The notes below the pieces were generated by a model. The model did not search any database. It saw only the letters and a list, made by a program, of their open reading frames with translations, and had not been told where the DNA came from. A DNA stretch of 64,000 nucleotides from Mytilus californianus (lineage: Eukaryota). The position numbers and the translations under genes were made by a program. The first letter of the stretch is position 1. Each line of letters starts with the position of its first letter. The stretch spans positions 115,754,001 to 115,818,000 of the forward strand of contig NW_026262723.1 in NCBI RefSeq assembly GCF_021869535.1, in the 5' to 3' direction. Shown one piece after another: positions 1,971 to 53,800 of the stretch.

Positions 1971-2018
<48 letters not shown>
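1971..2018. repeat. (GA)24 microsatellite
   Basis: Direct reading; the paralog has (GA)30. Confidence 0.97.
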
Positions 2019-2023
<5 letters not shown>

Positions 2024-12353: not shown

Positions 12354-12427
12354 AGACCCAACTTGACAAAATGTAAAACAATTCAAATGAGAAAACCAAT
12401 GATCTGATTTATAAATAAACATAAACG

Positions 12428-15518: not shown

Positions 15519-15781
15519 CTTAACTAAAGAAGTAAATCTCTGTCTGTCCTCTGGAGGGCTCCCTCTGTTGGCAGGATATTCCCAATCTAAGTCAAGACCA
15601 TCAAAACCATTTTGTCTAAGGAATTTTATTGAATTTGTAGCAAATGCATCTAAATTTGCTTGGTTTGCCACCATACTGGTAAATGGTTTAGTACCATGAT
15701 TCCATCCCCCAACAGCTAACAGTAGTTTTAAGTCAGGATTTTTACTTCTTACATCATGCATCATAGCATACTGACCTTGTT
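15519..15781 (-). pseudogene. GH18 catalytic exon of chitinase copy 1
   Basis: [10 protein letters not shown] ... [11 protein letters not shown] (DxxDxDxE intact); acceptor tttcag|AACAAGG, donor AAG|gtacaa. Confidence 0.95.
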
Positions 15782-16276
15782 CTGAAATTGATATGTATGA
15801 AGTTATACTATTTTCAGCCAAAGTTGTTTTCTGAAAATTTTAAAACAAACTGTAACAAATAAAAAAGAAAATACTAGTTGCTCGATTGACTTTTACTTAA
15901 TCACTGGTTTTGATAAACGTGTTCTTTTAGTATATATAGTAAAACACAACATCTAAATTTGGTTGATACAGAAATGTATCTTTTAAAAGAAGTAACGGAT
16001 AATTCAAACGTTTAACCAACCAAAACATCGCTTTGTAATTTGACAAATATGCAATTCAATATGTTATAAAAATAAATAGAGACGGATTTATAAAAGTTTT
16101 CAAAACTTGTTTCCGAATCCCATATTTATTGCACTACTTTATTGTTATAATTTTTTCATAATAAATACTGTTTTAACTAAAAAAAAAAAATTGAAGTCCC
16201 TATAAGAACAAAAACAATTAACACGAAATAGTAAAACAACATTTAAATCAAATAGTACGTCTGGTACCTCTGATAT

Positions 16277-16553
16277 ATCAATACTGGTGTCATAAAACAA
16301 CCATGCTATCAAAGAATTACTACCACAACATCAATACTGGTGTCATAAAATAGACCATATTGTCAAAGAATTACTACAACAACATCAATACTGGTGCCAT
16401 AAAACAACCATGTTATCAAAGAATTACTGTTACAACATCAATACTGGTGTCATAAAACAACCATGTTACCAAAGAATTACTGCTACAACATCAATACTGG
16501 TGTCATACAACAACCATGTTATCAAAGAATTACTGCTGCAACATCAATGCTGG
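16277..16553. repeat. 53-bp minisatellite (~5 units), chitinase intron 2
   Basis: Unit CATCAATACTGGTGTCATAAAACAACCATGTTATCAAAGAATTACTGCCACAA. Confidence 0.93.
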
Positions 16554-16914
16554 TGGGGAGATGTATAATCATGTTATGGTGCCACAACGCTACAAGAAGC
16601 TATTTTCTCCTATAACAAAATTACAAAGCAGGAAATTTAAGACTGAATTCTAAAGGCCTTTTCGTTTCTTGTTTTGATGGGTTGTACCTTTGACGTATAC
16701 ACAAACTATCTTCCTTTATTCATTTCAAGTAGCAGTATATGACACACCACAGCAATAAACGTTGTTCCTGTTATGCCATTATTTTGTTGTAGAGAATAAT
16801 TTAGTACATGTAAGTATGGGTTATCACCAATAGCCAGTTAATGGGATACAAACAAAAATGTACATAGAACAAATATCGGTAACCAAAGACTTTACATTTA
16901 AACTAATGAAATTA

Positions 16915-17230
16915 CCCCATGCACGAATGAATTTTACCCTATGCACTATTGAACCTATCCTATGCACTATTGACCCTACCCCATGCACTATTGAACCTAC
17001 CCAATGCACATATGAACCTACCCTATGCACAATCGAACCTTCCCTATGCATAATTGAACTTACCCTATGCACTATTGAACCCTACCCTATGCACTATTGA
17101 CCCTACCTTATGCACAATTGAACCCTACCTCATGCACCATTGAACCTACCCAATGCACATATGAACGTACCCTATGCACAATTGAACCTTCCCTATGCAC
17201 GATTGAACCTACCTTATGCACTATTGACCC
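16915..17230. repeat. 21-bp minisatellite (~15 degenerate units) next to the exon 2 donor
   Basis: Unit CCCTATGCACTATTGAACCTA; only ~4 units in the paralog. Confidence 0.9.
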
Positions 17231-18458: not shown

Positions 18459-18822
18459 TGTTACACCACTGTCCCAGGTTAGGGGGAGGGTTGATCGCTC
18501 ACAAACATGTTTAACCCCGCCACATTCTTTATGTGCCTGTCCCAAGTCAGAAGCCTGTAGTTCAGTGGTTGTCGTTGGTTCATGTCTATCATATTTGTTT
18601 TTCGTTAATTGTTTTGTTATAAATTAGGCAGTTAGTTTTCTCAATTGAATTGTTTCATATTTTTCATGTCGGGGCCTTTTATAGCCGACTATACGGTATG
18701 GTTTTTTCTCGTTGTTGAAGGCCGTACGTTTGCCTAAAATTGCTTACATCCACTTTATTTGAACTTTGGTGGATATTTGTCTCATTGGCAATCATACCTC
18801 ATCTCCTTATTTTTATATTTAC
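18459..18822 (+). mobile_element. Full-length short interspersed element, family C, with 6-bp target-site duplication
   Basis: ATTTAC at 18453-18458 and 18817-18822; the paralog (~56250) has an empty site with one ATTTAC. Begins TGTTACACC, ends CATCTCCTTATTTTTAT. Confidence 0.88.
18466..18568 (+). ncRNA. Putative twister ribozyme, circularly permuted P5 type (family C head)
   Basis: P5 CAGGUU/AGCCUG plus outer CCACUG/CAGUGG; P2 CCCC/GGGG; GAGGG; U^AA at 18512-18514; P3 CACAU/AUGUG; P4 CUG/CAG; loop UCCCAAGU; T1 CCC/GGG; T2 GC/GU. Folded by eye. Confidence 0.72.
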
Positions 18823-26946: not shown

Positions 26947-27548
26947 TCATGATTTACATTCGGGAAAAGTATGTGGCGAGTAGACAAGGAAGGCCTCTAA
27001 AGCGCCCTGAATAGTGTTTAGAAAAATGTAATTACCAATATCAGTCAAATGTACACCATCTTGACATATAAATGTAGAATTAGGAGATATATCGGGGTAT
27101 CGTATGTAATGTCCCCCTTGGCGAATGATATAACTTGCTAGCGAGCTGTTTATTCTCTGCCTGGATCTATCCATTGCTTCAGTATCAGCGGAGTAACGCC
27201 AAGTGAGTCTTGGCAAAATTTGTGACCATACCAATGTGCTATTCAGTAAAAGTTCTGAAACTTTCTTCAAATAATTTTTTAGTCTATTACGTAACACTCC
27301 TGTCTTACTTTCTCCTAAATCATTTCCCCCTATGTGTAATACTAGATAAGTTGGGGGTTCCTCATATCTAAGCATCAGCTTGATCCTATTTAGTAGATCA
27401 TTAAGCCTCATTCCGCTTTTACCCAACCACCACAGCCGAACACCATTTTGATCTTGTCCAAGATTAATGCCACCTGGTCTTGTTCTAGCTTGAACAAATG
27501 CATTTTTCACCTAGGAGGAACCAACAATCCAAATTGTAGTTGGTGAAC
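26947..27548 (-). pseudogene. SGNH/GDSL-type hydrolase of the retrotransposon
   Basis: Blocks WIVGSS (then TAG at 27511-27513), GKSGMR, LHIGGNDL, DGVHL; preceded by an acceptor-like atttcag. Confidence 0.85.
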
Positions 27549-27626
27549 CTGAAATTCTTAAATAGCGGTTAGTCCCACTAAAGTGATTGCAAGTTCATTA
27601 CACAAAATTGTAAATAAATCTAACAG

Positions 27627-28529
27627 TTATAGACATTGTTGTATTCGAATATATGAACGAAATGAATCAGACTTCCACCTACCCATGGCCTGAATTTCAG
27701 AATCAGATAAGCCATTCATGGCACCGCTTGTGGCAGCACCTATCCTGAAAGAATGAGAACTATATTTTGCTTGACTTAAACCCAAAATATTCAGTGACTT
27801 TTTTAGGACTCCCGAAAATTGGTATCTAGTGATAAGGATTCCATAAAAATGACAAAACAGTTGACCAGCGACATTTGGTCTAATTTTTAAGTAATTACGT
27901 AAAGCGAAAACTGCACAAACATCACCAGGCCTATCATCAATAACAATTGTAGTTCCTGTACAGCACTGGTCAGTCTTAGATGAACGTAAGCGGATTTCAA
28001 TACTGGATAGATTTATCTTAATGTCTTTATAATCAAGTGCATGGGATTGGGTTGAGGCGTGTTTTTGGTCGGTTAGTTCGCCACCTCTAAGGAAACCAAA
28101 AAAGGCCAAGGAAAACGAAGCTTGGAAGAGTTTAGTTTCAAAATCATTATGACAAACAGCAGGTAGAACGTTATTAATTTTTGACAATAAATCACGCGTT
28201 ATGGGTAACCTAGCATCCTTTGGTCGACGCTGTGAACGCCTCATTCCTTCGAGTAGCTTTCTGACAACAAAAGCATTAAAGCAGTCAGTATAATTGTTAA
28301 TCTTACTGAAAAAACTCAACCCAGAGATATACGATTTGACAGTTGAGGCCGCAGTTCCAGTGAATGACATATAGGCAATATAGTTAGTTATGTGATGTAA
28401 TGGAATAGGCCATAGATCTTCGAATTGGAATAAGGCCCTAAAATCATTAAATGACCGTAAAGTTTGTTGGTAAACCTTTACCGTATTAGGTGCGACTGCT
28501 GATACAATTAGTCGGTCAATTTCAGTTTA
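27627..28529 (-). CDS. Tyrosine recombinase of the retrotransposon (open frame; first Met at 28370)
   Basis: FFGFLRGGE, SKTDQ, SHSFRIGAAT, GRWKS..F.SYIR: catalytic R, K, HxxR, W, Y all present; the frame is open upstream to ~28529 and overlaps the RNase H end. Confidence 0.93.
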
Positions 28530-28858
28530 GAGATCAGGTCTATGAACTCCCGAGGGACTATTTCCAATGTATCCTCCGCCAATGGTGCTAACCTTCTGAA
28601 CTTGTCTAACTGAAAGCGAGAGAGAGCGTCAGCTATATTATTTTTGGCACCTACAATATGTTTTGCCTTGAACTGAATGTTGTAATGCATGGTACGCAAC
28701 ACGAATGGTCGAATTATTGACATTACTTGTTTTGATTTTGATGTTCTCTTGTTTAGTATATCAACCAACGCGATATTGTCTGTACGAAACAAAATCTTAC
28801 TATTTTTCAAAAGAGGAGCCCATATACAAAGTGCTAGAAGTATAGGAACGAGCTCCAA
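28508..28858 (-). pseudogene. DIRS-type RNase H domain
   Basis: ELVPILLALCIW ... FRTDN ... AKHIVGAKNNIADALSR; separated from RT by stops and frameshifts. Confidence 0.9.
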
Positions 28859-29186
28859 AAATGTTATGTCTTGTAAAATGTTTAATCCTTCCTACGAATC
28901 TGGCCATTTAAACTGTACCCATTTTCTGTTAAAGTAAGATCCACAACCAAGTTCAGCATTGCCTGCACTATCAGTAAATAGTTGCAAAATATCATTATCT
29001 GTCCAATTCAGACCAAGAATCTCCATTAAAAGATTTTAAGAATTCTAACCATACCATGACGTTCTCTCGAATTTCAGAGGTAATTCAAACTGAGAAAAAT
29101 GGTTTCTTGACCCTAAATGATGCAATAACATCATGAAATCTCCGCAAAAATGCTCTAGAGGATGGCACAGCACGTGAACAAAAAGC

Positions 29187-29790
29187 TTATAACCCAACTA
29201 GCGACTCGAAATCCTTCCGCTTTATTGTCATTGGTTGAAGTTGAGAACGTAATTTAATAAGCTTGGCCACTGGAATACGAACTACTATGTCAACTGTGTC
29301 TATTTCTAAGCCAAGAAAAGTTAATCTTGTAGTAGGGTGTATTGTTTTGTCCTCGGCTATAGGCACGCCTAACTCATTAAAAAGTTCTGTAAAGGTGTTC
29401 ATTAAAACCAAGCAGTCATCCGAATTTGCAGAACCGCCGAATATGAAATCATCTAAATAATGCTTACTAGTAACTGAATGCTTACCAGCAGATGAAACAA
29501 CCAACCAATGCAGGAATGTAGAGAATTTTTCAAACAAGGCGCAAGCAATAGAACAACCGAATGGAAGGGATTTGTCCACATAAAAATTACCATCAAAATA
29601 TATTCCAAGTAAATCGAAATCACCTGGAGAAATAGGCAAAAGACGAAAAGCGGACTTTATGTCCTGAACCCCAAGTCTGGCCCCCTTGCCGAGAGATGAC
29701 ACCATGTCGATTACTTCATCAAAGGATGTGTTCTTTACAGATGTTTCATTGGGATTGACAAAGTCATTGACACTACAACCGTTTGGAATA
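29187..29790 (-). pseudogene. DIRS-type reverse transcriptase fragment
   Basis: DIKSAFRLLP, LPFGCS, HYLDDF, LTFLGLEIDT; N-terminus lost near 29790. Confidence 0.93.
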
Positions 29791-34415: not shown

Positions 34416-37091
34416 TTATGTAACAACATCTGAGTCCCTGTTAGTTAGCATTGCCTTAATAGCATTTAGTTTCGCTACTTGTACTGAAAGCCATTGTTGG
34501 ACTGTCTTCCTGCTGCAGAGCAATTAAATGAGGAAATAAAAAACGGCTAAACCAACAACCCCAAAATATATATAGTAAAGGCCAACGATACTATCTAATC
34601 CAAGCGACCGTGCAGAACCAGTTCTATTTGAACTTGTACAATCATCAGACAGAGACCACCATTGTTTAAACCATTTTTCAATTACTACTGCTTCATTCAT
34701 CTTCAGTATTCTATATCAAAAAGAGAGAAAAGAAGAAGCTTTTAACAACAGTGCATTAATAATGGCGCTGCAATGAATTTAAACCGCAGATTTAATTTCA
34801 TGAATGGACATATTAGAATCATAGAAACGTTTGTTTGTAGTGCTCATAGTATGAATGAAAGAAGATTTGAAATATACATCAGTGAGACAGCAACTAAATG
34901 ACAAACATAACGAGAAGACATATAGAGATCAGCATAAGGGCTTCCAAAATATACAAGTGCTTAATAGCTTTAAATCTCACAAGTTTAAAAATGTTGTGAG
35001 TAGATATAGTATTCGTTTTTTTTTGGTCAAGTTTTCAATAAAAATGATAATTACAAACTTGTACAACAGGTAACTTACGCAAGATTAAATGCATTCAAAT
35101 AAGTTGAGTTTTATTCGAGAACAAAGCCAAACCCTGCATTGTTGAACTTTTCGTCCGCCATGGCGTATGTCTGACAATCTTGTAACATGATGTATTCCAG
35201 TTGTGAAAAGTCCGACATGAATGCATACTCATTGGTACGCACGTAGCTCAGTGTGGTATCTATGTCTTTACCTATTGGCATACCAGACATTTAAGTCCAT
35301 ATCTGTCTGTATACCGACGATTTAGAAGTCTGTGAACATATAAATACCAAATATTGATATAAACATTAGATGTGATATGAATGCCAATGAGACAGCTATC
35401 CACCAGAGTTCAAATGAAGTGGATGTAAGAATACAGCTAAGAAAGTCTTTCGTGGTTAGATAATTCATTTCGATAGAATAAAACAATATCATCAGTAATC
35501 CACAATTAAAAAGTTCCGATTCGTACAATTATCCTAAATACTTAATATAATTATTTTACTGTTTATGAGAAATTAGTCTTTGGTAGATTGTCCTTCTTTC
35601 TCGTCTATCAGTAAAAGAACAATTACTGACATACAAGCATGTTTCGATAGTTTAAACATGGATATCTGCTTTTCAGAGTTGCCGCCCCTAGCACAAATAC
35701 AGTTTGGGTTACTTGTATTCTCCAGACTAAGGTAATACTTTAGATAAGATCGGGATAAAATCTCTTACAGACGTTATAAATGAACGTTCTTTTTTACTTG
35801 AGAAAATTTCAAATGTATAATATCATGAACTGTGTGCGAACGTTTTTAGTCTCAAGGTTTTAGTTTTTATGTCTTTTAAGGACGACATATAGATTTCAAA
35901 TAATTTATGAATATGAACTTGTTACTGTAATCAACTTTTACAAAATAGCCAATGTATTATGTTATTTTAGCACTAATGTAATTATTAGACTTTTAAACAT
36001 TTGCAAGTATCTTGTATCATGTTTTACTACAATCATATAATGTTGATTTTAAATACTATGTTTTGATGACACAGGTGTCAGTACCCCGCTGACGCTTGCC
36101 CCCGTTGTAAAGGGGTAGTTTCACAATGAAATATATATATGTATACAGCAATTGACGCAATTGATAATTATTAGTTTAATTATAAAAAAAAAACACTGAA
36201 ATATATATAGATAAAAAGACTACAATTGATATGATTTAGTTTTGTATATGCTTTAATTACCTTTTTACATTACTGTATTTACAAAAAATATTGAAGATAT
36301 TCTTTCAAATTTTCAGTAGTGTAGGTTGCTTATTATCAGTACAAAACGGAAGAGTTTATATAAATAGTGTTTGTCTATTTAAATCTGAATATCAATTAAA
36401 TTCAGTACAATTTCGTTTCCACCGGATAAAGGTACCCCGAAGCGGTGGGAAAAAAACAAATGTTAATTCAGGTAAGGTCAAATTCTTCTTATTTTCATTA
36501 TTTTCTAAGTTTTGCTGACAAGTAAAGTTGTGTGATAGTGATTCCTAATAATGTAGCTACTATTTAGGACTGATCCTTTATTGGCTTTCTCTCTCGCCAA
36601 ATCCTCAGAATCGGATAAGGGGTACCTGTTCAACGAAGCATGTGAAGAGTTCAAACTTTTTAAAACACATTTATCCTTCAACTATTCATTTTACGTTTTT
36701 GAAGAACAAAGGTATATCATATTTAAGCTTGAACAACACTGTATTTTGAAATAAACTATTATTTTTACTAAGATATTCATGTAAATAACGCGGACAAATA
36801 GTACGGCGAATAGTGGCGAATAGTTGTTTACTGTATGGGGATAAGAATAGGGGCTTTTTGCTATCATTTTGTCTTTGCTGCGGGGTACCTATATCCGATG
36901 GTGATGCTTCACAGTGAACATGTACCTTAAACAAGGTATGAAGATTTGATCCGGAAAATATAAAGGGTCGAATGTCTTTATGATTCGCAAGTTCCTCGAG
37001 ACTATTGATAGGTGATTCGATGATTGTCACAGTCACATAGGCAGCAAGATTGGCTGTGTATGTCGCTAACATCGTCGTCGTTAATCTCCTC
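34416..37091 (-). pseudogene. Ionotropic glutamate receptor (iGluR/IR-like), last three exons (M3, S2, M4, C-tail)
   Basis: Phase-compatible exons 36926-37091, 35079-35329 (YAFMSDFSQLEYIMLQDCQTYAMADEKFNNAGFGF) and 34416-34710 (KQWWSLSDDC ... SIVGLYYIYFGVVGLAVF). In-frame TAA at 35291, 35111 and 34524. Confidence 0.9.
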
Positions 37092-38802
37092 CTAAAAATG
37101 ATCAAAAGTTCAAATATATCATAACAGTACAACCCCCCACCCCCCCCCCCCCCATTCGTATTCCCGAATATGACTGTTATACTGAATGTGAATTTGCATT
37201 GCTGTGCGGCGTGTCTCGGTGTTTTGTACAGCCAACATTAATGGATTTATTTTGATGTTTCTGTTATGGTTTCGGTTGGATAATCTGTTATGTCTTATCG
37301 TTTGTAGTCCAAATCGTTATAAAATTGCCTTTCCATACCATCATTGTCATGAAAATTGTTTGGACGAATATTGTGAAAATAATTGTATAAAGTTCGAGAT
37401 TGCATGTTAGTTACGTAAGCGCGTCACTGTTTTTGATATCCTGTGGTATTTTTCGTTGATGGAATATGTTCGTTGTTGTTGCATGTTGTGTCGACTATTA
37501 TATTATTTGTTTGTGCGTTTATCTGTTATGAATGTTCTTGCGTGTGTTTGTGCTGTATTTCTGTCACGTACTGTTTTAGCGATATTTTTTAACATTGTCA
37601 TAAAGCGATGAAACCAGGTTCAACCCACCATTTTTTCTTAAAATGTCCTGTACCAAGTCAGGAATATGGTAGTTGTTATCAAATAGTTCGTTTCTATGTG
37701 TGTTGGCGTTTGTTTTTGTTGCACTTCGGTGTTCCTGTTGTTCCTTTGTTTTCCTCTTTTTTGGTTTGTAACCCGGATTTGTTTTTTCTCAATCGATTTA
37801 TGACTTTTGAACACCGGTATACTACTGTTGCCTTTATTTATCAATATGAACATATTTCTTTAAAACATATTATATCACATAAGGTATTGGCTATATGTAT
37901 TTGCAGGTAAACTACATAATATCAAACAATTTAGGAGGAGCTATGGTATGGGCCATTGATTGATCTTGATGATTTTAATGGTATTTGCGGAAATAGTACC
38001 TACCCATTAACTAGTAAAATGAAAAATATGTTCAACGCCTCTTCTCAGGAATCTATTTCAACACCAATATCAACAACTGAAGATATAACTACTAGTAAAA
38101 AATCTGATGACATTAATAAAGAAACCACTTATACATCTACAGAAAGTATTTCCAATGACATATTCTCAACTAAAGATATTACAACAACTCAAGCATCTAT
38201 TAAAAGTGATAAACCAACCAGTCCTTCAACCCAAGAACCCATCTTAACGAGAGAATCAACAACTTATGATACCCTTACTGATAGCAATACACGCAGACAA
38301 ACAGCAGACACAACAAGCTATAAGTCACATACAAATATGGAGTCAGCAGATACACTCGAATTAACAACGTTAGCAAGTAAGCCAACCGTTCAACCTTCAA
38401 TGCCTGTTTCAAATCTTTCCACTCATATAGAAAATGATATTACAGAGATTACACCGTCGACAAACACATCTACAGAACATTCCAGTAAAATACTGAAAGA
38501 AACTACAAATACCTACAGTCCTGTTTCAATAAGTAATCAAAAAGAAACATCCGGAACATCTTCAATGCAAACTGGTTTACTATTTTCTACTGTGAAGACA
38601 TCGACAGAGACATCACATTCAACAGTCCCAGAATTAACCACAAAGTCAGAATCGATCTCCTTGACAGAAACTGACTTTACAGCTGTTACTTTATCATCAA
38701 CAACATCTAAGATACCAGATTCACAAGGATATTCACTAGGTTTTTATACACTGTTATGATAAAAATGAATAGCTGTTCTGTAAATCTGTTTTGAACACAC
38801 AC

Positions 38803-38805
<3 letters not shown>

Positions 38806-38865
<60 letters not shown>
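38806..38865. repeat. (GA)30 microsatellite
   Basis: Direct reading. Confidence 0.97.
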
Positions 38866-38870
<5 letters not shown>

Positions 38871-39654
38871 CGAACTTTAAACGGAGATAGACAGGACAAA
38901 AACTCATTAAAATACCAAGAAAACAAACAAACAAACAAACAAACCAGGGATAAACCAAGGTGAAATGTGTTGCTTAGATAAATTAAAATATAAAAATCTT
39001 TAATCGGAAAATTTAGATTACATCCGACCCACGCATTTTGATAAAAAAAAAGTCATCGAAGTTTGGTAAAATAAGTTTACATAGCTAGAAGCAGTTTTTT
39101 TTGTAAGATAACAAAACAAGTCAGCTGTGGCGTGTGTTATACGATATTTATTTATAGCTGAACAATTGAACCAGTGTACAAAATAAAAACAGTAGGATTA
39201 GCTAGATTGAACCGCCTCCCAAAAAAAACCCCCACAAAAAACACACAATCGAATGTCAGACAATTATTTATTCAAAACGGTATATACTCATGTACGCCGG
39301 CTCATGTCAGCTTGAAACACTGAACAATATAGTCTATTAGGAGGAACGTTCTAAAATGTTTGCGGCATCAGGTTATTTGAAAGCGTTAGCTGATTCCATT
39401 TATTGAATTTGAATATAATTGGATCACATGTATTATGTGTGAACGATAACACAAGAGTAGATAGAATGAACTCGATAGTGTTATAAAGACGTTATGCAGG
39501 AAAATCAACTCCTGTTGCGTATCATATAGCAACAAGTGTCAAACTGAAGAAGAAATATGACAGCCAGATGACATTAGACATGTGTGATTTGTTGAGAACC
39601 TTGGACAGTATACAGCCCAACCAAGTTTGTGATGATGACTCACAAACTATTAAA

Positions 39655-40055
39655 AAGTAAAATCACAAAAATACTGAACTCCGAGGAAAATTCAATCGGA
39701 AAGTCCCTAATCACATGGCAAAATCAAATGACAAAACACATCAAACGAATGGACAACAACTGTCATATTCCTGACTTGGTACAGGCATTTTCAAATGTAG
39801 AAAATGGTGGATTGAACCTGGTTTTATAGCGCTAAACCTCTCACTTGTACGACAGTCTTATCAAATTTCGTTATATTTACAACGATGCGTGAACAAAACA
39901 GACATTATAAATAAAATAGTCAAAATATGGGTACAGCAGTCATCACTGTGTTACAATATCAAAACAAACAATTATTTACAAAAAAAGCACAAAAGCATCT
40001 ATCAAATTAAGACCCACATTCATTGCTTCGCGTGTCTGACGTCAGAAAATGTAAA
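39655..40055 (-). mobile_element. Recent 401-bp family B insertion, flanked by duplicated TAAA
   Basis: Absent from the otherwise near-identical copy 1 (empty site CTAT-TAAA-CGTG at ~2805); paralog offset jumps from 36846 to 37247. Confidence 0.92.
39759..39856 (-). ncRNA. Putative P5-type twister ribozyme variant inside family B
   Basis: P5 ACUGUCGUA/UAUGACAGU; GAGGU; C^AA; P3 CAUUUUC/GAAAAUG; P4 CCUG/CAGG; loop UACCAAGU; T1 ACC/GGU; T2 AC/GU; P2 weak (UCC/G-U-GA with a bulge). Confidence 0.62.
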
Positions 40056-41932
40056 CGTGTTATTCGAAAATCCTTCAGTATATAACATGTTATTGTGTTC
40101 TTTTAATTTATCTTTGTATATGGTCATTTTTTGTATTTTGTCTTTTATTTTTGCTTATGTGCTTTTTCTATAGAGTGTTTACATGACATTTTGTTTTTCT
40201 TTGTTGACATAGTTATTTGTTTTTATAGTGATTAAGATTATATCACAATGTTGACTATTGAACCTCATTTTTGACATTTTTACCTATTATGTTTGTTTGT
40301 TTTGCTCACACATTGTTGTCAATATAATGGAATTCTATGCGACTGTCAAACAAGTGAGAGGTTTAGCTAGCTATAAAACCAGGTTTGATCCACCATTTTC
40401 TTCAAAAGGAAATGCCTGTACCAAGTCAGGAATATGACAGTTGTTTTCAACGTTTGATGTGTTTGATAAAAGAATAAGTGATTAAAACTAATATTTTATG
40501 ATCTTCACAACAGTTTACTGTTTCCGAAAATGATTGATTAATTCACAAAAGCAAAATTCGTATAGTTGTCTCATCGGAAATCATACCACATCTCCTTATA
40601 CTTATATTAATAGAAAAATAATTTGAGTCATTTATACATTTCAGATGCAGAGAAGGATTTAGACAACACATATATTATTATAATTGTTTTGTCGGTGGCC
40701 CTGTTCTTATCTTTTCTATGTAATGTAGTTCAATATATGTGTTCACGAAAAGATGACGACAACGAGAACTGCTCCTGCTTCCGAAATCACAAACAGACTT
40801 TTCAGATGTCGCATCTATGACCCGAGATATTCAGGCGATGTATTTTAATATCATACGGCTAAATTCTATTCTCTATCTTTTTTTCTTAGATCTTTTTTTT
40901 TTTTTTTTAAATCTGTACCATAGGAGATTTTATGTATAACCAGGTGCAGTGGACATATAGGCTCTTTCATTAACAATAAAAAAAAAATAAGTCGTTTCCT
41001 TTACCACTTCAGAAGCCAATGAAATACTAAGAATATGTGTCACCCACTGCTTTCGTTTCACCATGTTCCCTGTCTGTAATCTAAGATTTTTTTTGCCACT
41101 CACCATCGGCGTTGCTTTTGATTTGTCTGATTCTTCTATTGTCATCGAGATTTCGTTTAGTGATATTATTTATCGACAATCAAAGAAAGCAATGTCAACG
41201 CGTTCTTACTTTTAAATTTTCATTTTTGTAATATTTTGTTAAGTTTTTTCAACCAATTATGTTGTATTTGTTTGAATACAACAATACTTGCAAGTCTGAC
41301 AGTCAAACACATTGAAATTCAGACATTTTCATCAATAAATCATAATTAATATGCATTACAGTAAACAACTTTGCGCGTGCAAGTAATTGCTGTTAAGAAC
41401 AGTTTGCAGTCTGATGTCGTTATACAATGATATTCAGTGTTTAAATAGAAATGTTTCTAATTACACAATTAACTGATTCTGTTATTAATCACTTATGATT
41501 TTACTTTATTCCTCTAGTTACCATAGTCTAGCTTTGATAATACCGTTAACAAAATATTTAGGTAAGTTTTTTAACATTTACATAATGCGGGAGTCGTGAA
41601 TGCTTAATTTCTCCTGTGATTTAAAAAAAAATCATAAAAGACACCAAGATTTGGTATGCCTCTCCAATTTCGTCAAAACAAGATTAACCAGTGACGATAG
41701 AATCAAATCAAATAGAAGATCAAATCCAATGCGTAGTTGAAAACATATAAAACCAAAATGTCCAGAAGATCTGCAAAATACGGCTACGGTTTTTCGTGCC
41801 TGGGGGTATAAAACAACATTGCACAAAACTGCAAACATATATTGATGCCACTGCTGAATGTGAGGCTGATTATCCTTCCATCCTGGCAAATGAGCTGTTC
41901 TAACTATTACACAGACAAACAATTCATTTAGG

Positions 41933-42258
41933 CATCATACCATCCTGCATAACTATACTTTGGAACCTATTAAATCAGCAAAATATCTCGGTGTTACCTT
42001 AGAGTCAAATTTTAAATGGAATAATCACTACGATAATATCACATCAAGTGGAACAAATATATTTACTTCCTGCAGAGAAACCCAAAAGCATCAAACAGCA
42101 ACATTAAATCACGTGCATATCAGTACACAGTGAGACCACATCTGCGGTTTATGGGATCCTCATACAAGAGAATATAACTAGAAATGGAGCAGAGGCGAGC
42201 TGCCCGTTATTTATGTAACATATATCTTTAACTAAAGTGACAGTAGTTTACTGATGTT
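41933..42258 (+). mobile_element. Degraded LINE RT remnant, duplicate of 4685-5010
   Basis: Same KYLGVTLES...WNNH and QRRAARY remnants. Confidence 0.8.
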
Positions 42259-44802
42259 CAAATTTCGTAACTCTGTTAGAAAGAGAAAAATCAAAGGAAC
42301 AAACAAAAACCGATGAACTCCTAAAAGAGCGAGACGGGTGAGTCGACAGGGTAAGCGTTTTCTGCTATGTATGCATCACTCGTCATGTAAATTCACCCTC
42401 AGTCAAAAAGGGGCGAAGGATACAAAAGGGACATTCAAACTCATAAGTCGAAAATCAGCTGACAACGCCATGGCTAAAAAAGAAAAAGACAAACAACAGT
42501 ACATAAAACATAACATAGAAAACCAAAGACTGAGCAACACGAACCCCATCAAAAACTGGGGGTGATTTCATGTGCTTCAGAAGGGTACGCAGATCCTGCT
42601 CCACATGTGGCACCTGTTGTGTTGCTCATGTTAGTACAAACCAGGTGATAATTCTAATCCGGTAGGTCACATTCAGGGAAAAGGGGACGGGATTGTATTT
42701 ACGACAATTGGAACATATCAAAATGTCACAATCAGGAAAAGGACACATAACAGTAGTGTTACATCAAAGATAAACACCAGGCTGATTAAATTCCTTAAAG
42801 TCGTTTGTCGCTAGTCCTCAAGCCAACAAATACGAGAATAAGAAAAACACATAACCAAATATTCCAGACAATTTCTAACTGATGCAACAGATCGTAGTCT
42901 TCAATAACATGAAGTTGAAACTATATCTGAAGAAGAAGCAAAAACCGCAATATTTTCCCGACCTTATGGAGCACCTGTGGTCATCATCATAATTGCAAGG
43001 GGTTCGATATACCATTAGCTTTTTTTTATATTGTTTCTTTTATTTCAAATATCTGCGTTTTAAGTAAGTAATTGTCTTTCATCATGGTGTTAATTTGCTA
43101 TAACCATTTATTGTATTCTTGTATTTCATTTTTGTTTATGTGCTTTGTCTATAGAGTGTCTTCATTTCATTTTATTTTTTCTTTGTTAACATAGTTGTTT
43201 GTTTTAATAGTGAGTAAGATTATAGCACAATGTCGACTGTTGTACCCCAATATTTGACATTTTTACATATAATGTCTATTTGTTTTGCTCACACATTGTT
43301 GTCAATATTATGGAATTTTGTGCGACTGTCATACAAGAGAGAGGTATCGCTAGCTATAAAACCAGGTTTAATCCACCATTATCTACATAAGGAAATGTCT
43401 GTATGTGTTTGATCTTTTGAGTTTGCCATTTGCTAAGGGACTTTCGTTTTGAATTTTCCTAGGAGTTCGGCATTTTTGTTATTTTACTTTTTATCATTTG
43501 CACTGAAAAAATGTACGGTTATGATAAAGAAATAATAGTTTTACCAGTAACAAGGATTATAAATAAGGGTTAGACAAAAGACATTTACAAATCTGCTACT
43601 TAATATGGCCTTTTTAACAAACGCGATGGTCATATTGACTGTTATATAAAAATTTCAACACTTCACCTTTTGTTGACAAAGATAATGGTCATCGCCTCTC
43701 CCTAACATTTCTCATTGAAATCCATTTAACAGATTGATATCTTTGTGTAGTAACCCTTTATCAAAATTTTAAATTTATTCATATGATCAAAAAAGCTGCT
43801 ACAGAAAGTTAGCCTTTGCCCTTATCATACCACATTCCTCGTTCATTGTTGCAATCATCTGGTCCGTATGTTTGTCCGTCTGTTCGTCCAACAACTATTT
43901 TCGTCACACTTTACTCAGAAACTAGTGATTAGAATGACTTTATATTTGGTCAGCAGACTGACAGTGGTGTATTTTTTGGATCAGTCAAATACCAACTTCC
44001 TGTTTGCCATTACCTTGAATTTTCTAATATGATGAATGATCTTAAACTTTTGGTCACATATTTCCCAAATACTACTAAACAGGATGACTCCATATTTGGC
44101 AAAGAGCTAAACAGCGATAAATTGTAATGTATATACGCTTTACGGATCTGTCAGACACCTTTTTCATAATTTTCGGTAATTTGAGATAGGATTTGGGATT
44201 TGCTTAGCACGACAGCACGTGCGTTCTGGCTTTTTATTGCAGTCACTAAAAACTTATATAGCAAGTAATTGATCACAAAAATGTCCATCTTTAAAAAAAT
44301 GATTAATAGTTAATTTTTATTATTTACAATGTAGTGTCACATTTACTATCTGTGTCTCCCTAGTATTATTGACATCATGTCTACAATAAAAAAAAAATCA
44401 AATAGAATTACTATTGCAGGTATATATTTCTTTTATAACACTTAATGATTTATAGTTATGTTCAACATAGTAGTGTTCAAATCATAAAACGATGCTATGT
44501 TTAACATTTGACTTAAAGGATATAGGAAAGATTTTTAGTTAAGAGAAAGTGTGATTTTTTGTATAACACATTGTTAAACATTTTCTATTATCAAATAGTT
44601 CCTAACAAGCTTGGACTGAATAAATATGTACAATAAATGATAGAACGAGTCACAAAAAGGCTTTCTATTGCGCCAATCTATATTTGTGGACTTTCGATGT
44701 TTAGTTGTTATAAAACTGAAGTTTACAGCCAAGCATACCTATTACATTTATGGTTTTTAAATTATATTTGTAAAACACTAAACAGTTAATTACCTAATGA
44801 TA

Positions 44803-47800
44803 TTATCCAACAACTGGTAGTACAGTTGGTACAAAATCGAGTCCTGGTTTTCCACTGAAAACATCTTTCATTGTTTTAATTAAAGGGTTTTTGCCTTGCC
44901 CACAAACGCCATGGAAGTCATCTAGATCTAATGCCCACATCATACCTCCTCCTAAACCTAGGTCCATAATATATTTTGTCTGTTTGGAAAAAAAAAACAA
45001 ATTATGTTTAAATTTTAGATAATCCTTGTTAAACGACTATACTGGTAAAACTCTTCTATGATATAACTGTCAAAATGTGTTCCAAGTTCGAATTGTCGGT
45101 ATCTGTTCTAGGTAAAACAGTTTTAAAAAATTTTTCTCTGATTATTAATGAACTCTTTACACTAAAGCCATTGGATGTTGGATGTGTACTGATTGATATT
45201 TTAGTCTTAGTTACAAGATTTTTTTATTAGTTGTTATTGGCTTTAAACTAGATTTAAGTAACTGAGAATACTCTCAGATCTGTACATTATGTCTTATGTG
45301 TTAAGTGTATTTTGTGCTTTTGAGACTGTAATTCTGTGGTTGTCGTTTGTTGCTAAATATCATATTTGTTTTTCGTTTATAGTTTTGTCAGGCAGTTAGC
45401 TTTCTTGTTTGAATTGTTTTACATTTGACTTTTTTATAGCTTGCTATAAAATGCGGTATTGGTTTTACTCATTGTTGAAAGTTGTACGATGACCTATAGT
45501 TGCTAACTTCTACGTCATTTGGTCTCTGGTGGAGTGTTATCTCATTGGCGATCATACAACATCTTCTTATTTTTATAAAACGGTTTCATGGTATAAAACG
45601 CTTCTGTCAGAAACTGTTTTAAGATGTCAACAGAACTGTTCTTAAGACTGTACTAGAACAGCTCCCAGCACAGTTCATGACAGATTTGAAGGGAGGTTAA
45701 AACTGATCCCAACTTTAGTAACAGTTACTCTCTATCTATTATAGAGGAGAGGCAGCAGATAACAAAGGGATAACAAAACGGATAGGGCAAAAAAAAAAAA
45801 ACTGACAACGCTTTGGAAAACAAACGTAAACCGACCATAAGACATACAACAGTCTTCAAAACACAATATAGAGGACAAAAGACTGAGCAACACGAAATCC
45901 ACCAAAAAACGGAGGTTTATTATAGATAGCAAAATTACAAAAAAAATCATCCCTGTACAATTACCCCAAAAGGAAGTCATCTGACAATTCTGGTCAAATT
46001 AGACGGTATTTTGTTCTTCGACTTTCGGCTCTTGGCAGGTTTTTTTCTACCAATAACGGTTTACAAGATAATTGACCATAGTCGCATTTACCATTTTGAT
46101 CTATTTTAAGTCTTCGCGAATATGCTGGTTTGAAGCGGGATCATTGGATACATTTTATAAGACAAGATACCCCATTGGTGACTATGACCGAGTTTGGTTC
46201 AAATTTTCAGATAAGTTCTAAGATTTTTGTAAAAGTTAAAGGACGATGGGCGATGGGATGGAAGCAAAGCGATTTAAAAAAAAAGGGAATTTCAGAGCCC
46301 TCATTTATACCGATTTCAGTGTTAAATAAAAAGTAAAGTAATTAAAACACCCATTAAGATGTTTGGTATTGTAGTAATCTTTTTCTGGCATAAATACTTA
46401 CTTTAATGGCAATACTTTTCGGAGTTTCGAAGGAGATCCATTGGTTATCATGGTAGGCATATGGTACTTTCTGTTCATCAAGCCAAACTTCTGTCCAATT
46501 CTGATACATTATGTCATAGCAGATCTAGCCAAAAAGAAATAAGGAGATGTGGTATGAGTGCCAATGAGACAACTCTCCATCCAAGACACAATGTGTAAAA
46601 AGTAAACAATTATAGGTCAAAGTACGGCCTTCGTTATGAATAAATCTTATTAATTGCCTTTGAATATTGCTTAGCTCTTCAATAAAGAAGATCTTAAGTT
46701 ATTATAAAATACTCAAAAACTACTTTCGAAATTCAAGTTTATATTTCTTTGATTATCACTCTAAGGAACTGATCTTGTATATCATAAGTAATACATTAAG
46801 AATTAGTCGTACAACAGACCATACAAACCAATTCTCCCGACTACACATAGATACACAAGCAAAATATATAACCATGACCAACACTTGGTCCAGATACTCT
46901 AACTATATATCGGCCCAAAATGTAATGGGGTAGCTTAAACGGGTTTTACAAGCACACACCTACTTTACCGTTTTCCATCATCGTAAAACAAAATGCCTAC
47001 ATATTCTAGCTACAAACACTCAGGATGACCAATTAAACGAGGAAAGAAATAAAAGACTATATATCGTAGAAAAGCACAATCTAAGTCATTATTTTGTGGA
47101 TCTCTTCTAACAGTATAATTTATTGATTGCTTTTTCTTGGTAGTCACATGTCATTTAGCAGTAAGTGTTTATGTCGGCCATGTTGTCGAGAAATAGTGAA
47201 TAAGTTCATTCGACAACCAAACATCTTATAGTAATAATGAATTTTCAACAACGTTTAGTGTTTCGAGAAGAATTCAAATGCAATACAAAAGCAAGCCTAC
47301 ATAAAAAATATAACACTAATCACAAAATTCCCTTTTAACAACTGATAACACAATGACGTCCAAGACATTAATGGATAATTAGCCTACAAACCCAAGTTAA
47401 CCCTTACATATACGACATGCAAATATAATGATTAACGTGAGCACTGGATAAAACTGCCATCAACGGCATACGGGAAAAAACTGTTAGAACACAATTCATA
47501 TGTAAGCCACCATAAAAGGTTAAGGATAAATTCACATGAAACCAAATGACAACGATAAAATTTAAAGTGTTAGCTTGATGAATAAGTATCATGCATCAAC
47601 TTTCCAAATAAAGATGAAAACATTTTAAATGTGATTTATACGTAAATAAATGAAAATAATACTGGTGCGTCCATGACACTTGTCTGGAATTCCTATATCT
47701 ATTTATCATATCAAACTTACCTCATAATATGATAAGAATCCCTTTTCTTTTGTGGTTAAACCTGCAGTACCCTGGCCATCAGTAGGAGCACCCAATCCTG

Positions 47801-50800
47801 TCTCAGATGTATTATTCAATACAAAAGACCTTCCATATGTTGCCATACCTAATACAAGTTTTTCTTTCGGAGTACCGCCATTTAACCACATTTTAACAGC
47901 AAAATCCTAAAAACAAACAATGTCAGCCTCAATACGTTGTAATATCCAGTATAGAGTTTAAAACAAATGGAGCAACAAAAAGACTTCAAACAATGGGAAA
48001 ACACATGCCGTATAATAAGTAATTAACAGTGGGAAAACACATGCCGTATAATAAGTAATTAACAGTGGGAAAACACATGCCATGTAATAAGTAATAAACA
48101 GTGGGAAAACACATGCCGTATAATAAGTAATAAACAATGGGAAAACACATGCCGTATAATAAGTAATAAACAGACCCAACATGACAAAATGTAAAACAAT
48201 TCAAATGAGAAAACCAATGATCTGATTTATAAATAAACAATAAACTATAAACAAATATGACAGACATCAACCCATGACTACCACTTCAGGCTTCTGATTT
48301 GAGACAGGCACACATAGAATGTGCAGGGCTAATATATATAAGAAGATGTGGTATGAGTGCCAATGAGACAACTCTCCATCCAAGTCAAAATTTATAAAAG
48401 TAAACCATTATAGATCACAGTACGGTCTTCAACACGGAGCCTTGGCTCAAACCGAACAGTAAGCTATAAAGGGCCCCAAAAAATTACTAGTGTAAAACCT
48501 TCAAACGGGAAAACCAACGGTCTAATCTATATAAAAAACGAGAAACGAGAAACACTTATGAACCACATCAACAAACGACAACTACTGAACATCAGATTCC
48601 TGACTTAGGACACTAAACATGTTTACACTAAACCTTCACCAGACTGGGATATTGGTGTTACAACATAACAAATAAACAGGCTGTAAAATCAGTTTAAAAG
48701 GATCGGCACGTAGAACAAAAATCAAACTACAAAAAGAAACAAATACAAAAGACTCCAAAAACCGATGTAAGAATATTTGCAGCTATTGAAAGCTAGTTAA
48801 AAGCCGATCACAATTAATAAATACATCATTATTTCCAGACCAGAATATCAAATAGTATATGAGAAAAGCATGAACTTGTGTGATGTCAAAATATAAGTAT
48901 CGACAAAGATGAAGGACCATAAGCTTTCAAAACTATATAGCAATATACTGTAACATTTCGTAATGTTAAACTATTGATAATAAAATCAATGTTAGTGCCA
49001 AAAAGAAAATATTCAATTATCTAACATCAGTGTTAAACTGATAACCTTTAATAATAAGTTTATTCAAAGGTTCAATAAGTTAACTTGCATCGTATTAACA
49101 TTCACGGGCTCTCTAGACAAAATTATCATACAAATTAGGATGTGATATCCGCTTTGTAATAAATTTTCTACGGGTACAACCAAACTTCTTGTTTTTCAAA
49201 TGTATCAATTGCGCCAATATTCGGAACTCATTTTCGCCAATTTACCTGTACACATATTTATCATACATATTAATGATTAATATATATTTATTCTTATTTT
49301 TGGCTTATAAAGTATCATTCGTGAAATAATTGTTACTCTTGGTGGTGAAAGGTGGTGAGTATAAATAATAGGATTTACACTATAGTAAAGGTATGAATAT
49401 AAATCAACAGGTGAACACTAATTATAAAAAGTGTCCAGTGAAGAATAATGAAAAATCAGTTTGAGAGAAGTCTTTGCTTGGAAAACATGGATATAACTAT
49501 AAAGAAATTAGAATCGAATCGAGGGAAGCCAGTTGTTGTTTTAGATAGCCATAAATTCCGTCAGGTTTTATAAAAAAAATGTGGAGAAACAAGATGGCGA
49601 TTTACTTCCAAAAAAGGCAGTGTCACCACTTATACTGATGAGCAATTTATAGCTGTTTTGAGTGGATATCTTGCACATATACATGAGACAGACCCACAAA
49701 AGTAAGAGAGGTAAATACTACGCACGGCATGCAAAAGAAAAGCTACAGAAAATATATCCCAGAGACCATTTAAGATCATATGTTCGGAGCTATTTCACCA
49801 TGAAGAGGAACATCTGGAGAAAAATAACTTAAAACGCATTAGACAGTCCATGTACAGAGAGAGAAAACTACACTGCCCAACCGAAAAATTCTATAGAATT
49901 TCATGAAATTTTAAGTGAAATTGGAGTCATCACAAATAAGGAAGAAGAGTTTGTTTTAGCAAATGATATTGGAAGTGACATTGTTATTCCTGGTTGTGAA
50001 GCTTACTTGAAATTTCTTTGTTTGCAGGCAGAGGATGTATTTGCTGATGGAACATTTAAGTGTTGTCCGAAGTATTGCAAACAATTGTATACAACACATG
50101 GATTCAGGAATGGATTAGCCTTTCTGAACCCAGATGAAGTAGTTGATTCCAATGCTGAAGATTTAATACAAGATATGCCAAAAGAGAAGAAAATAGATTC
50201 TTTTGGTGAATATGTTTTAGCCACATATGTTGATGACAGTGCTATGTTCCCACCATCTGTATGGGCTGAAACCCCATCTACGGCAAGACGTACCAATAAT
50301 GGAGCATAGGCATTCCACAAGAATTACAAGGAACTGTTTTATGCATCCCATCCTTCAGTGTTTGTGTTTTGGACAATATAGTGAAGCTACAAGCTATTGC
50401 ATACATTAAATTGCGAAGTACTCATGCAGCAGCAGTAAAAAGTAGACATGTTTCAGAAAAGGAAACATTTGCCGTTCAAAAGTATGAGAAATATGCAGAA
50501 GAACTCAGCCGCAGAGACTTTGGTTGTGTAATGAGTTACAAATTCCAGCCTTTTTTATAATATATATGTTGTCTGACTGTTCATAGTTTTATGTTTTAAA
50601 GTATTCTATTAAATGACTTAAAATGACTTTATTTCCGCCAGTGTACACTGCCGGTCCCAAGCCCGGATAAAGGAGGAGGGAGTCATTTTTCTTTTAATTG
50701 GCGCAATCGTATATTTCATTTTTGGCGCAAATGATAATATGTAATTTTAAAACAGGTAGCGCAAACGTAGCATTGGAGAAAAAAGTTGTGGCGCAAAAGG

Positions 50801-53800
50801 ACGCATTTTTGGTGCAAACGGATTTCTCCCGTACCAAGTCAGGAATATGACAGTTGCTTTCCATTCGTTTGATGTTTTTGAGCTTTTGATTTTGCCATTT
50901 GAGAAGGACTTTCCATTTTGAATTTTCCTTGGAGTTCGTTATTTTTGTGATTTTACTTTGTACTGTTTATAATTACTTACCACATTATTAGCCTCGTATG
51001 GAGTTTGTGATTTATATAGTGGAGTATTACATTGTGTTCCATTATAAAAATCACTATTCATGTCAAACGCCATTAGATTTATAAAGTCCAAATATCTGGA
51101 AAAAACATTTGATAAAAGCAATTGATAGATATAACCAATGTTCTTTTTTTTTCTTCAGGAGAAGCACATTTGTGATCTGTATGTTGTAATAGATAACAAT
51201 AAAATCCAATATGAGAGTAGAAACTTCTTCAGTGTTTGCATATTATGAAATTCTTTTGATTAATATTGTATCTTCGAAGAAAACTTTTTAAGTTGAATTA
51301 ACTAGTGTCTAATACTATTTGCGATATTTTGCAAATAAAATATGTTCAAACTAACAAAAGAAAAAAAAAATGAAAGAATCTTCACCATTAATAATTAGAT
51401 GTAAAAAATAAAAATTTTACCCTGCTATTTTGCTGATTTCGTACGCAGTCTGTATTTCCGGTTTACTGGCTGCCACTGCTGCTGTTAACAACAGACGAGA
51501 ACTACCATTTCTTAAATATTCACTGTCATATTTTGTTCGTAATGTCTACAAAAAGTTTATTTTTCATCAAACATTGATGAACAATTAATCATGCTATAAA
51601 AAAAAATAGTATTAACATCAACTACTCATATTTACTTATTTGAAATAGTATTAGCATCAATTACTCATACTTACTTATTTGAAATAGTTTACTATCAATT
51701 TATTTTGAACAAAAAAAATATATTCAATTAAACTAGAAAAATAATAAATCCTTTACCTATAGAAATAAGGAGATGTTGCATGATTGCCAATGAGACAGCT
51801 ATCCACCGAAGTTCAAATGAAGTGAGTGTAAGCAATTACAGGCAACCGAAGGCAACCGAACGGCCTTCAACAATGAGAAACCCCTTACCGTTCTGTAGAT
51901 CTTCATATAAAACATTACAATTTGTAAATATGAACAGAAAATGCATTTTCTTTAAGATTTATTAATAATGTGTACCTTAACTAGAGAAGTAAATCTCTGT
52001 CTGTCCTCTGGAGGGCTCCCTCTGTTGGCAGGATATTCCCAATCTAAGTCAAGACCATCAAAACCATTTTGCCGAAGGAATTTTATTGAATTTGTAGCGA
52101 ATGCATCTATATTTGTTTGGTTTGCCACCATACTGGTAAATGGTTTAGTACCATGATTCCATCCTCCAACAGCTAACAGTAGTTTTAAGTCAGGATTTTT
52201 ACTTCTTACATCGTGCATCATTTCATACTGACCTTGTTCTGAAATCGATGTGTGTGAATTTATATTATTTTTAGCCAAATTTGTTTTCTGAAAATTTTAA
52301 AACAAACTGTAACAAATGAAATAGAAAATTCTAGTTGCTCAATTGACTTGTCGTTAATCACTGGTTTTTTGATAACGTGTTCTTTTAATAAAGTAAAAAA
52401 CCACAACATCTAGATATTTTAAAAGCAGTACTGGATAATTCAAACGTTTAACCAACCTAAAAATTGCTATGTAGTTAGACAAATATTCAATATAATATGT
52501 TATATAAAAAAGAGACGGATTTATAAAAGTTTTTTTTAAACTTGTTTCTGAATTCCATATTTGACTGCTATGTAAAATTGTACTATTTGATTACTATAAT
52601 TTTTCCGTAATAATTATTGTGTTAAAAAAGTCCCTATAAGAACAGAAACAATTATCAAGAAATAGTAAAACAACATTTAAATCAAGCAGTACGTCTGGTG
52701 CATCTGAAACAGCAGAACTGATGTCATAAAATAACCATGTCATCAAGAAATTACTGCCACAACATCAATACTGGTGTCATAATATAACCATGTTATCAAC
52801 GAATTACTTCCACAACATCAATACTGCTGTCATAAAACAACCATGTTATCGAAGAATTACTGCCACAACATCAATACTGGTGTCATAAAACAACGATGTT
52901 ATCAAAGAGTTACTGCCACAACATTAAAACTGCTGTCATAAAACAACCATGTTATCAAAGAGCTACTGCCACAACGTCAATACTGGTGTCATAAAACAAC
53001 CATGATATCAAAGAGTTACTGCCACAACATCAATACTGCTGTCTTCAAACAACCATGTTATCAAAGAGTTACTGCCACAACATCAATACTGGTGTCATAA
53101 AAACAACCATGTTATCAAAGAGTTACTGCCACAACATCAAAACTGCTGTCATAAAACAACCATGTTATCAAAGAGTTACTGCCACAACATCAATAGTGGT
53201 GTCATAGAATAACCATGTTATCAAGAAATTACTGCCACAACATCAATATACTGGTGTCATAATATAACCATGTTATCGATCGCGAAGAATCACTGCCACA
53301 ACATCAATATACTGGTGTCATAAAATAGACCATGTTATCAAAGTGTTACTCCACAACATCAATACTGGTGTCATAAAATAACCATGTTATCAAAGAGTTA
53401 CTGCCACAAAATCAACACTGGTGTCATGAAATAACCACATTATCAAAGAATCCCTGCCACAAAGTCAATACTGGTGTCATGAAACAACCATGTTATCAAA
53501 GAATTACTGCCACAATATCAATACTGGTGTCATAAAACAACCATGTTATCAAAGAATCCCTGCCACAAAATCAATACTGGTGTCATTAAATAACCATGTT
53601 ATCAAAGAATTACTTCCACAACATCAATACTGGTGTCATAATATAATCATGTTATCAAAGAATGACTGCCACAACATCAATACTGGTGTCATAATATAAC
53701 CATGTTATCAAAGAATGACTGCCACAATATCAATACTGGTGTCATAAGATAACCATGTTACCAAAGAATGACTGCCACAATATCAATACTAGTGTCATAA

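Follow-up and report, generated by a model that had tools for sequence, protein, structure and literature searches.

A candidate P5-open twister module with both pseudoknots rebuilt in a currently mobile Mytilus repeat

The new observation in this work is a predicted P5-open, P1-less twister in which both pseudoknots have been rebuilt and which is carried by a currently mobile repeat. The module was found in a 64-kb window (the whole stretch of 64,000 nucleotides of Mytilus californianus DNA that was analysed), where it lies on the minus strand inside a 401-bp insertion of a repeat which we refer to as family B. We consider it likely, on the strength of the letters and their comparison, that this is a module of the twister class which forms the fixed 3' part of very abundant, 5'-truncated retroelement ends. 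The comparison of related copies presented here shows a fold that is maintained by selection in lineages which are still transposing.

Every part of a P5-open twister was observed at 39856-39759 of the minus strand, where the letters and pairings were read directly. The preliminary description of this DNA had proposed a permuted twister fold for family B, and all of its letters and pairings were recovered at the minus-strand coordinates it gave. Along the minus strand the element runs from the P5 5' strand ACUGUCGUA through CAA, P2' (GUGA), GAGGU and a 21-nt stretch with the palindrome UAGCGCUA, and continues with C^AA, P2 (UCC), AC, the P3 hairpin, P4 (CCUG), UACCAAGU, CAGG, AA and the P5 3' strand UAUGACAGU. 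The features are as follows.

39655-40055, minus strand: whole family B insertion, 401 bp; the module occupies element positions 200-297 and is followed by a 104-nt tail
39848-39856, minus strand: P5 5' strand ACUGUCGUA; nine of nine pairs with 39767-39759, one of them G.U
39841-39844, minus strand: P2 3' strand GUGA with U39843 bulged; the partner is UCC at 39811-39809
39836-39840, minus strand: GAGGU, the aligned counterpart of GAGGG in the Rfam twister consensus and in family C
39815-39835, minus strand: stretch at the P1 position, without a P1 stem; holds the palindrome UAGCGCUA at 39834-39827
39813-39814, minus strand: predicted scissile step C39814^A39813, then A39812; placed by alignment to UAA of the twister consensus
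39807-39811, minus strand: P2 5' strand UCC (39811-39809) and T2 dinucleotide AC (39808-39807); pairing read from the letters
39786-39806, minus strand: P3 hairpin of 7 bp (39806-39800 with 39792-39786) and a 7-nt loop
39770-39785, minus strand: P4 CCUG/CAGG (39785-39782 with 39773-39770), closing L4 UACCAAGU
39759-39767, minus strand: P5 3' strand UAUGACAGU, partner of 39856-39848
39655-39758, minus strand: 3' tail without poly(A); L051 and L006 have homologous tails

The loop L4 (39781-39774) has the form U-N-C-C-A-A-G-N and is adjoined by the G39782-C39773 pair; its ACC strand forms T1 and its GU strand forms T2. T1 consists of the pairs G39838-C39778, G39837-C39779 and U39836-A39780 (loop ACC with GGU), and T2 consists of A39808-U39774 and C39807-G39775 (AC with GU). 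Within GAGGU, G39840 occupies the general-base position, A39839 is the trans A.A partner and GGU forms the 3' strand of T1. We take the general-base G to be the first G of GAGGN from the alignment made here. The catalytic nucleotides are present in the 39655-40055 copy, namely A39813, G39840, A39839 and the U..AAG of L4. The cut had been predicted between 39814 and 39813, and the letters there are as described and fit the alignment with the twister consensus. P2 is formed by U39811-A39841, C39810-G39842 and C39809-G39844, and this helix of 3 bp with a bulge was singled out as the weak point of the fold, to which we add a competing CAC/GUG register that would consume the T2 dinucleotide. The two P1 strand positions of this copy show no complementarity to each other.

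In PMC5408937, PMC5113685 and PMC11662667, T1 is described as three Watson-Crick pairs with a trans A.A pair and T2 as two pairs, and the A 3' of the cut is given as the general acid with a G as the general base. Other Watson-Crick pairs can replace those of T1 and T2 (PMC5113685). According to PMC11662667, helices tolerate bulges, and it is in the pseudoknots that imperfections are least tolerated. PMC5408937 describes P1 as phylogenetically conserved yet dispensable, with P1-less twisters cleaving near the wild-type rate; because P1 is dispensable for activity, its absence does not exclude the module from twister membership.

The Rfam consensus used for comparison was P1-UAA-P2-GC-P3-P4[UCCCAAGC]-UAAA-P2'-GAGGG-P1'. 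Canonical twisters are characterised by GAGGG / GC / UCCCAAGC, and in the 39655-40055 copy one pair of each pseudoknot was observed to be swapped on both sides. In T1, the C at L4 position 2 is replaced by A together with a G to U change at the end of GAGGN (C-G to A-U). In T2, the G before P3 is replaced by A together with a C to U change at the end of L4 (G-C to A-U). The third pair of P4 also changes from G-C to U-A relative to the consensus, and every strongly conserved consensus letter is either kept or altered jointly with its pairing partner. At gathering thresholds no Rfam match was obtained in the 64-kb window. With relaxed thresholds, a local twister-P1 match was found over P2-P4 at 18 bits, as against a gathering threshold of 67.2 (E = 0.36 for 401 nt), and the Rfam models missed family C and the JYMV01 relatives altogether. 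Elsewhere in the window, a canonical P1-type twister with CCGGUCCCAAGCCCGG, GAGGG and a real P1 is located at 50626-50683 of the plus strand, where it scores 53.9 bits and also falls below the gathering threshold of 67.2. A family B tail fragment which starts at P4 (50828-50958) lies 145 nt downstream of it.

A paralogous stretch near 2808 lacks the 401 bp of 39655-40055 and is identical in all else, the flanks included. TAAA occurs a single time at the empty site, and the filled site has it at each end. Together with thousands of near-identical copies, this bears out the earlier proposal of a recent insertion by a recently mobile family. The two stretches belong to a direct duplication of about 37 kb (1-17200 and 36837-54000, 96-100% identity). 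Apart from the 401-bp insertion, its two copies are distinguished by the lengths of some minisatellites, and it may have arisen by segmental duplication in the very recent past or reflect the tandem assembly of two haplotypes. Other family B sequences in the window, with the duplicate coordinates in brackets, are given below.

2942-3217 (40189-40464): other B copy
5923-6242 (43170-43489): other B copy, with P4/L4 deleted
764-877 (37605-37718): other B copy, with the GAGGU region deleted
13651-13748 and 50828-50958: tail-only fragments

Two raw-read RNA-seq runs and two DNA contig sets were mapped to 39600-40110. The numbers of DNA contigs aligned were 22,687 and 128,113, with thousands at 99% identity or more. 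These contigs share a sharp 3' end at 39652-39654; the flanks past it are AT-rich but differ from one another. Depth is highest over the twister core, present in more copies than the B tail, and falls steadily toward the 5' end of the element (40055). Copies on 12 public contigs were also observed to have variable 5' ends. Because of the sharp 3' end, the falling 5' depth and the variable 5' starts, the pattern of family B is, as judged from these alignments, that of retroelement 3' ends with 5' truncation. We also looked for copies whose first letter coincides with the predicted cut, a footprint that retrotransposed cleavage products would leave. In two BLAST alignments the match starts at element position 243; upstream of one of these starts there seems to be diverged element sequence, and we make no claim from them.

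Families B and C had been described as unrelated, and this is not correct for the module itself. A covariance model built from family B only matches the family C copy at 18470-18563 with 35.3 bits (E of 2.6e-07 to 1.3e-06, depending on the search space), and the two families align even in the unpaired stretch which replaces P1. Only their bodies and tails are unalignable. P3, P4 and P5 had been said to pair fully and with sequences different from those of family C; the full pairing stands, while the difference fails for P4, since CCUG is also the P4 strand of the C copy at 18536, where its partner is damaged (CAGA). The C copy in the window carries a G.U pair in T2, which is the expected intermediate between G-C and A-U. 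By this alignment, B and C share one inherited twister module joined to different bodies. Since the B-only model matches C, the double covariation between the two families represents divergence within one module and not two inventions.

A distant relative of family B was found at L051:2766-2860, with a homologous tail and the same UACCAAGU, GAGGU and AC. It differs from the 39655-40055 copy at 15 of 46 helix positions. All seven altered helix pairs which are present in both copies are still standard and none is broken; six of these changes are double-sided (three in P5, one in P2 and two in P3) and one is a G.U to A-U change. L051 lacks the two outermost P5 pairs, its P2 has three contiguous C-G pairs, and T1 and T2 are identical at 10 of 10 positions. 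One P3 pair was observed to be U-A in the 39655-40055 copy, U.G in the second window copy (B2) and C-G in L051.

A covariance model from three B-type sequences retrieved 38 modules, 35 of them distinct, from the window, L051 and 12 contigs of a single ENA assembly (L152-L163), which were reached via 12 spurious proteins and carry animal-type genes. Over the 35 copies, 86.9% of cells form standard pairs, as against 33-41% when the partners are slid by 1-3 columns, and the covariation score is 0.225 as against at most 0.049. Changes on both sides were observed in 24 of 28 pairs (54 cells) versus 5-13 pairs (8-25 cells) in the slid controls, and in all nine P5, all seven P3 and all three P2 pairs, where the alignment is fitted to the structure of the model and the copies are related, so that the pair counts overstate independence. 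None of 500 shuffles reached any of the covariation measures. The compensatory exchanges in T1 and T2 that were reported at the outset are real, with covariation over the 35 copies and L051.

The first P2 pair is A-U in 17 and G-C in 8 across the 35 copies, and the bulged P2 position accepts all four letters (U 20, G 5, C 4, A 3). The outer T1 pair was found as U-A in 19 copies, G-C in 2, U.G in 2 and a mismatch in 3. Its two sides are coupled: of the copies with A in the loop, 19 of 20 have U as the partner, and of those with C, 2 of 3 have G. At the outer T2 pair, 24 copies have A-U, 3 have G.U, 1 has G-C and 4 are mismatched; at the inner T2 pair, 22 have C-G and 6 have U.G. Position A+1 is an A in 26 of the 29 copies with a letter there, and N-1 varies freely (U 12, C 10, A 5). 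G occupies the general-base position in 19 of 27 copies, the A of GAGGN (A46) is A in 26 of 27, and the two As of L4 are A in 33 of 33 and 31 of 33 copies. An intact core (P2, P3, P4, T1, T2, A+1, G, A and the L4 signature) was found in only 4 of the 35 copies, these being the 39655-40055 copy, two ENA copies and L051, and 39655-40055 is the only one among the 35 with 28 of 28 pairs. An intact most recent copy amid decayed ones is what would be expected if master copies keep the fold.

A third module lineage was observed at L155:8487-8579 of the minus strand, with P3 UGCAA/UUGCA, P5 UCAGAU/AUCUGA, the palindrome UGGUACCA, the loop UCCUAAGU and the T2 dinucleotide GU. Its helices are kept and its pseudoknots are partly wobble-paired. 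We also scanned metagenomes with a P4+L4 pattern in which A/C and C/U were allowed at two pseudoknot positions. Canonical P1-type twisters of one repeat made up 98 of the 121 matches, and a few mollusc-like P5-open copies were also seen. This repeat, found on most of the loci L002-L120, holds hundreds of canonical P1-type twisters with P2 CCAA/UUGG, GAGGG and the loop UCCCAAGC; our guess from the contig names is that the source is gutless-worm symbiont metagenomes. An antisense ORF covers the tail and core at 39629-39829 of the plus strand, and at least 132 spurious public 'proteins' (P0001-P0120) are antisense translations of the family B repeat, in which the motif PDLVQ is the reverse reading of the loop UACCAAGU.

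In the family reads and contigs, high-share variants inside the motif mostly fall at tolerant places, these being N-1, the P3 loop, the P5 G.U to A-U change and the palindrome centre. N-1 is C or U in about equal shares, and most family copies carry A for G39850, by which the G.U pair of P5 becomes A-U. The commonest variants lie in the P3 loop, at two variable positions and as short indels. A further high-share variant has one more A behind 39785, between P3 and P4, and another has TA inserted right in the middle of the palindrome (AGCGCU to AGCUAGCU), which leaves a palindrome. Among the variants listed for the family reads, none was located at L4, GAGGU or AC. In the two RNA-seq runs, at a depth of about 600-900x, no excess of read ends was seen at 39814/39813 or anywhere else, where the threshold of one fifth of the local depth flags only near-complete cutting of sense transcripts. 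RNA reads were found in both orientations about equally and track the DNA copy number, as expected for passive read-through transcription.

The P1-position stretch contains perfect palindromes of 6-10 nt in most lineages, and their sequences are unrelated. A comparison of the columns in 39815-39835, L152-L163, L051 and 18491-18514 gave UAGCGCUA, UAGCUAGCUA, UGGCAUGCCA, UGGUACCA, GAGAUCUC, AAACAUGUUU and UAAUUA by lineage. The differing palindromes and the centred TA insertion point to selection for self-complementarity, which might serve, for example, in RNA dimerisation. The predicted homodimer of this stretch has an energy of -19.3 kcal/mol and also sequesters GGU. The T1 strand GGU can in addition pair with AAACC (39824-39820), and this hairpin is present in the minimum-free-energy fold, where GGUUU/AAACC alone contributes a stability of -2.9 kcal/mol. 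We considered this hairpin as a conserved regulatory alternative and rejected it, as its conservation does not extend past the closest B copies.

No reverse-transcriptase or GIY-YIG ORF was found beside the B modules in the window, L051 and L110, and the gene calls and precomputed Pfam annotation of the 12 ENA contigs held no reverse-transcriptase match. ORFs matching reverse transcriptase, tyrosine recombinase (Phage_integrase) and GDSL-lipase were observed at 26947-29705 of the minus strand. The reverse transcriptase at 29187-29705 belongs to this tyrosine recombinase and GDSL element, whose make-up is that of a DIRS/Ngaro-type retroelement and is unrelated to the twister repeats. An ORF with a Lig_chan match at 36686-37132 of the minus strand is probably a glutamate-receptor-like exon of the gene which hosts these repeats. 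Family B lacks poly(A), is truncated at its 5' end and has AT-rich targets, which agrees with the Naiads (PMC8557442) and is no proof of a link. Naiad-type elements dominate bivalve genomes and were described without hammerheads (PMC8557442). Bivalves are among the taxa with predicted twisters (PMC11662667), and the flatworm element Perere-3, with twisters on a retrotransposon, is the one documented link to retrotransposition (PMC8501958). Our literature search returned no paper which joins twisters with Naiads or Mytilus repeats.

On our preferred reading, the B module descends from an ancestral module shared with family C and the canonical twisters. The B lineage rebuilt the outer T1 pair (C-G to A-U) and the outer T2 pair (G-C to A-U), where the T2 swap probably went through a G.U stage that is still present in C-type copies, and P2, P3 and P5 went on pairing through many double changes. 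The element RNA is predicted to cut itself between C39814 and A39813, like P1-less twisters in vitro. This cutting would trim or separate the transcripts of the element, a role proposed for hammerheads in other Penelope-like elements. Two RNAs may pair through the palindrome, and an intermolecular helix right after T1 could then replace the stacking of P1. The points against activity are the absent P1, the weaker pseudoknots, with an A-U for a G-C in each, the short P2, the sequestration of GGU and the absence of a cleavage signal in RNA-seq.

That the likeness to twister arose by chance is very improbable in our estimate, even with the weak Rfam score (18 bits, E = 0.36 for 401 nt) and with the bare P4+L4 16-mer occurring by chance in phage coding genes. 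A descriptor was searched which consists of a 4-bp P4 (with at most one mismatch), U-N-CCAAG-N, an adjoining hairpin, a pairing T2 dinucleotide and an upstream GAGGN whose N must pair with the loop; P2 and P5 were ignored. It matched four times in the real window, as against 0.015 times per shuffled window. The four matches are the 39655-40055 copy, the second B copy counted twice through the segmental duplication, and family C. The P4+L4 16-mer itself occurs exactly five times in the window versus 0.13 expected, and eight times when up to three mismatches are allowed. The 31 matches of the 16-mer in viral contigs were set aside as chance occurrences inside coding genes (phage) and are no twisters. 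Beyond the low expectation for the descriptor, chance is opposed by the fact that the window also holds family C and a canonical P1-type twister, and by covariation through every helix. A decaying relic without selection, in which covariation would come from shared ancestry and a structure-fitted alignment, seems improbable to us as well. In its favour, 31 of the 35 copies are damaged, the copies are related and the covariance model made the alignment. The slid controls retain this relatedness, yet they pair at 33-41% compared with 86.9%. L051 differs at a third of its helix positions with 7 of 7 altered shared pairs intact, two pseudoknot swaps needed four specific substitutions, and damage is expected in dead copies whereas the young copy is perfect.

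A twister-derived fold may instead have been kept for a non-catalytic role, for example as a handle for reverse transcriptase or as a signal for RNA dimerisation or packaging, with cutting lost or irrelevant; we regard this as rather unlikely. RNA-seq without a cleavage signature would fit such a role, as would the absent P1, the weak P2 and the weakening of both pseudoknots. The palindromy kept in many lineages suggests pairing between molecules, and the module always directly precedes the 3' tail, a place at which template recognition would be expected. Against this, conservation extends to the unpaired catalytic positions, for which a role in structure alone would give no reason, and all four intact copies keep every one of them. 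P1-less twisters also cut near the wild-type rate (PMC5408937). Our preferred reading of a twister-class module at the 3' end of 5'-truncated retroelements can be extended, and here we are only tentative, to the proposal that P1-less, P5-open palindrome twisters are the working ribozyme of the commonest bivalve retroelement ends (those of Naiad-type Penelope-like elements and of short elements derived from them), in the role that hammerheads have in other Penelope-like elements. The rebuilt pseudoknots would then be evolving under selection in a transposing lineage, and cutting would depend on the pairing of two RNAs.

Few biological roles are known for twisters. A twister module kept by compensatory evolution in such abundant and still mobile repeats would suggest that a whole class of retroelements needs some self-cleaving RNA. 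The repeats would also provide a natural experiment on the evolution of twister pseudoknots, and standard Rfam annotation would be missing tens of thousands of ribozyme-like motifs per genome. The pseudoknot covariation and the broad comparative test added here are the strongest support possible short of a bench assay.

The closest known system is the type P5 permutation of twister (Rfam clan CL00120, twister-P1 RF03160). The twister ribozyme and this permutation were reportedly described by Roth et al. in 2014, and we take the twister-P3 and twister-P5 models to be RF02681 and RF02684. The element order is the same in the B module and comprises P5', AA, P2', GAGGN, the P1 position, N^AA, P2, NC, P3, P4, L4 (U-NCC-AAG-N), P4' and P5. 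The B module differs in having an unpaired stretch with a palindrome in place of the P1 hairpin, in having A-U and not G-C as the outer pairs of T1 and T2, and in having a P2 of 3 bp with a bulge where P2 normally has 4 bp. Compared with the canonical twister at 50626-50683, which has GAGGG / GC / UCCCAAGC and a real P1, the core architecture and the genome are the same, whereas the permutation and the host element differ.

The twisters of Perere-3 resemble the B module in being located in a many-copy retrotransposon, and their P1 is degenerate or derived from the target. They are P1-type twisters at the 5' end of the element, where cutting defines the 5' terminus, whereas the B module is P5-open and lies about 100 nt from the 3' end. 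Cleavage has been demonstrated for the Perere-3 twisters and is predicted for the B module. The minimal hammerheads in the pseudo-LTRs of Penelope-like elements share with the B module that a small self-cleaving motif class is placed in a constant terminal part without poly(A). In both, the closing helix is shortened and self-complementarity suggests paired action; the Penelope-like minimal hammerheads are said by Lunse et al. (2017) to act as dimers. The two systems differ in the class of the ribozyme.
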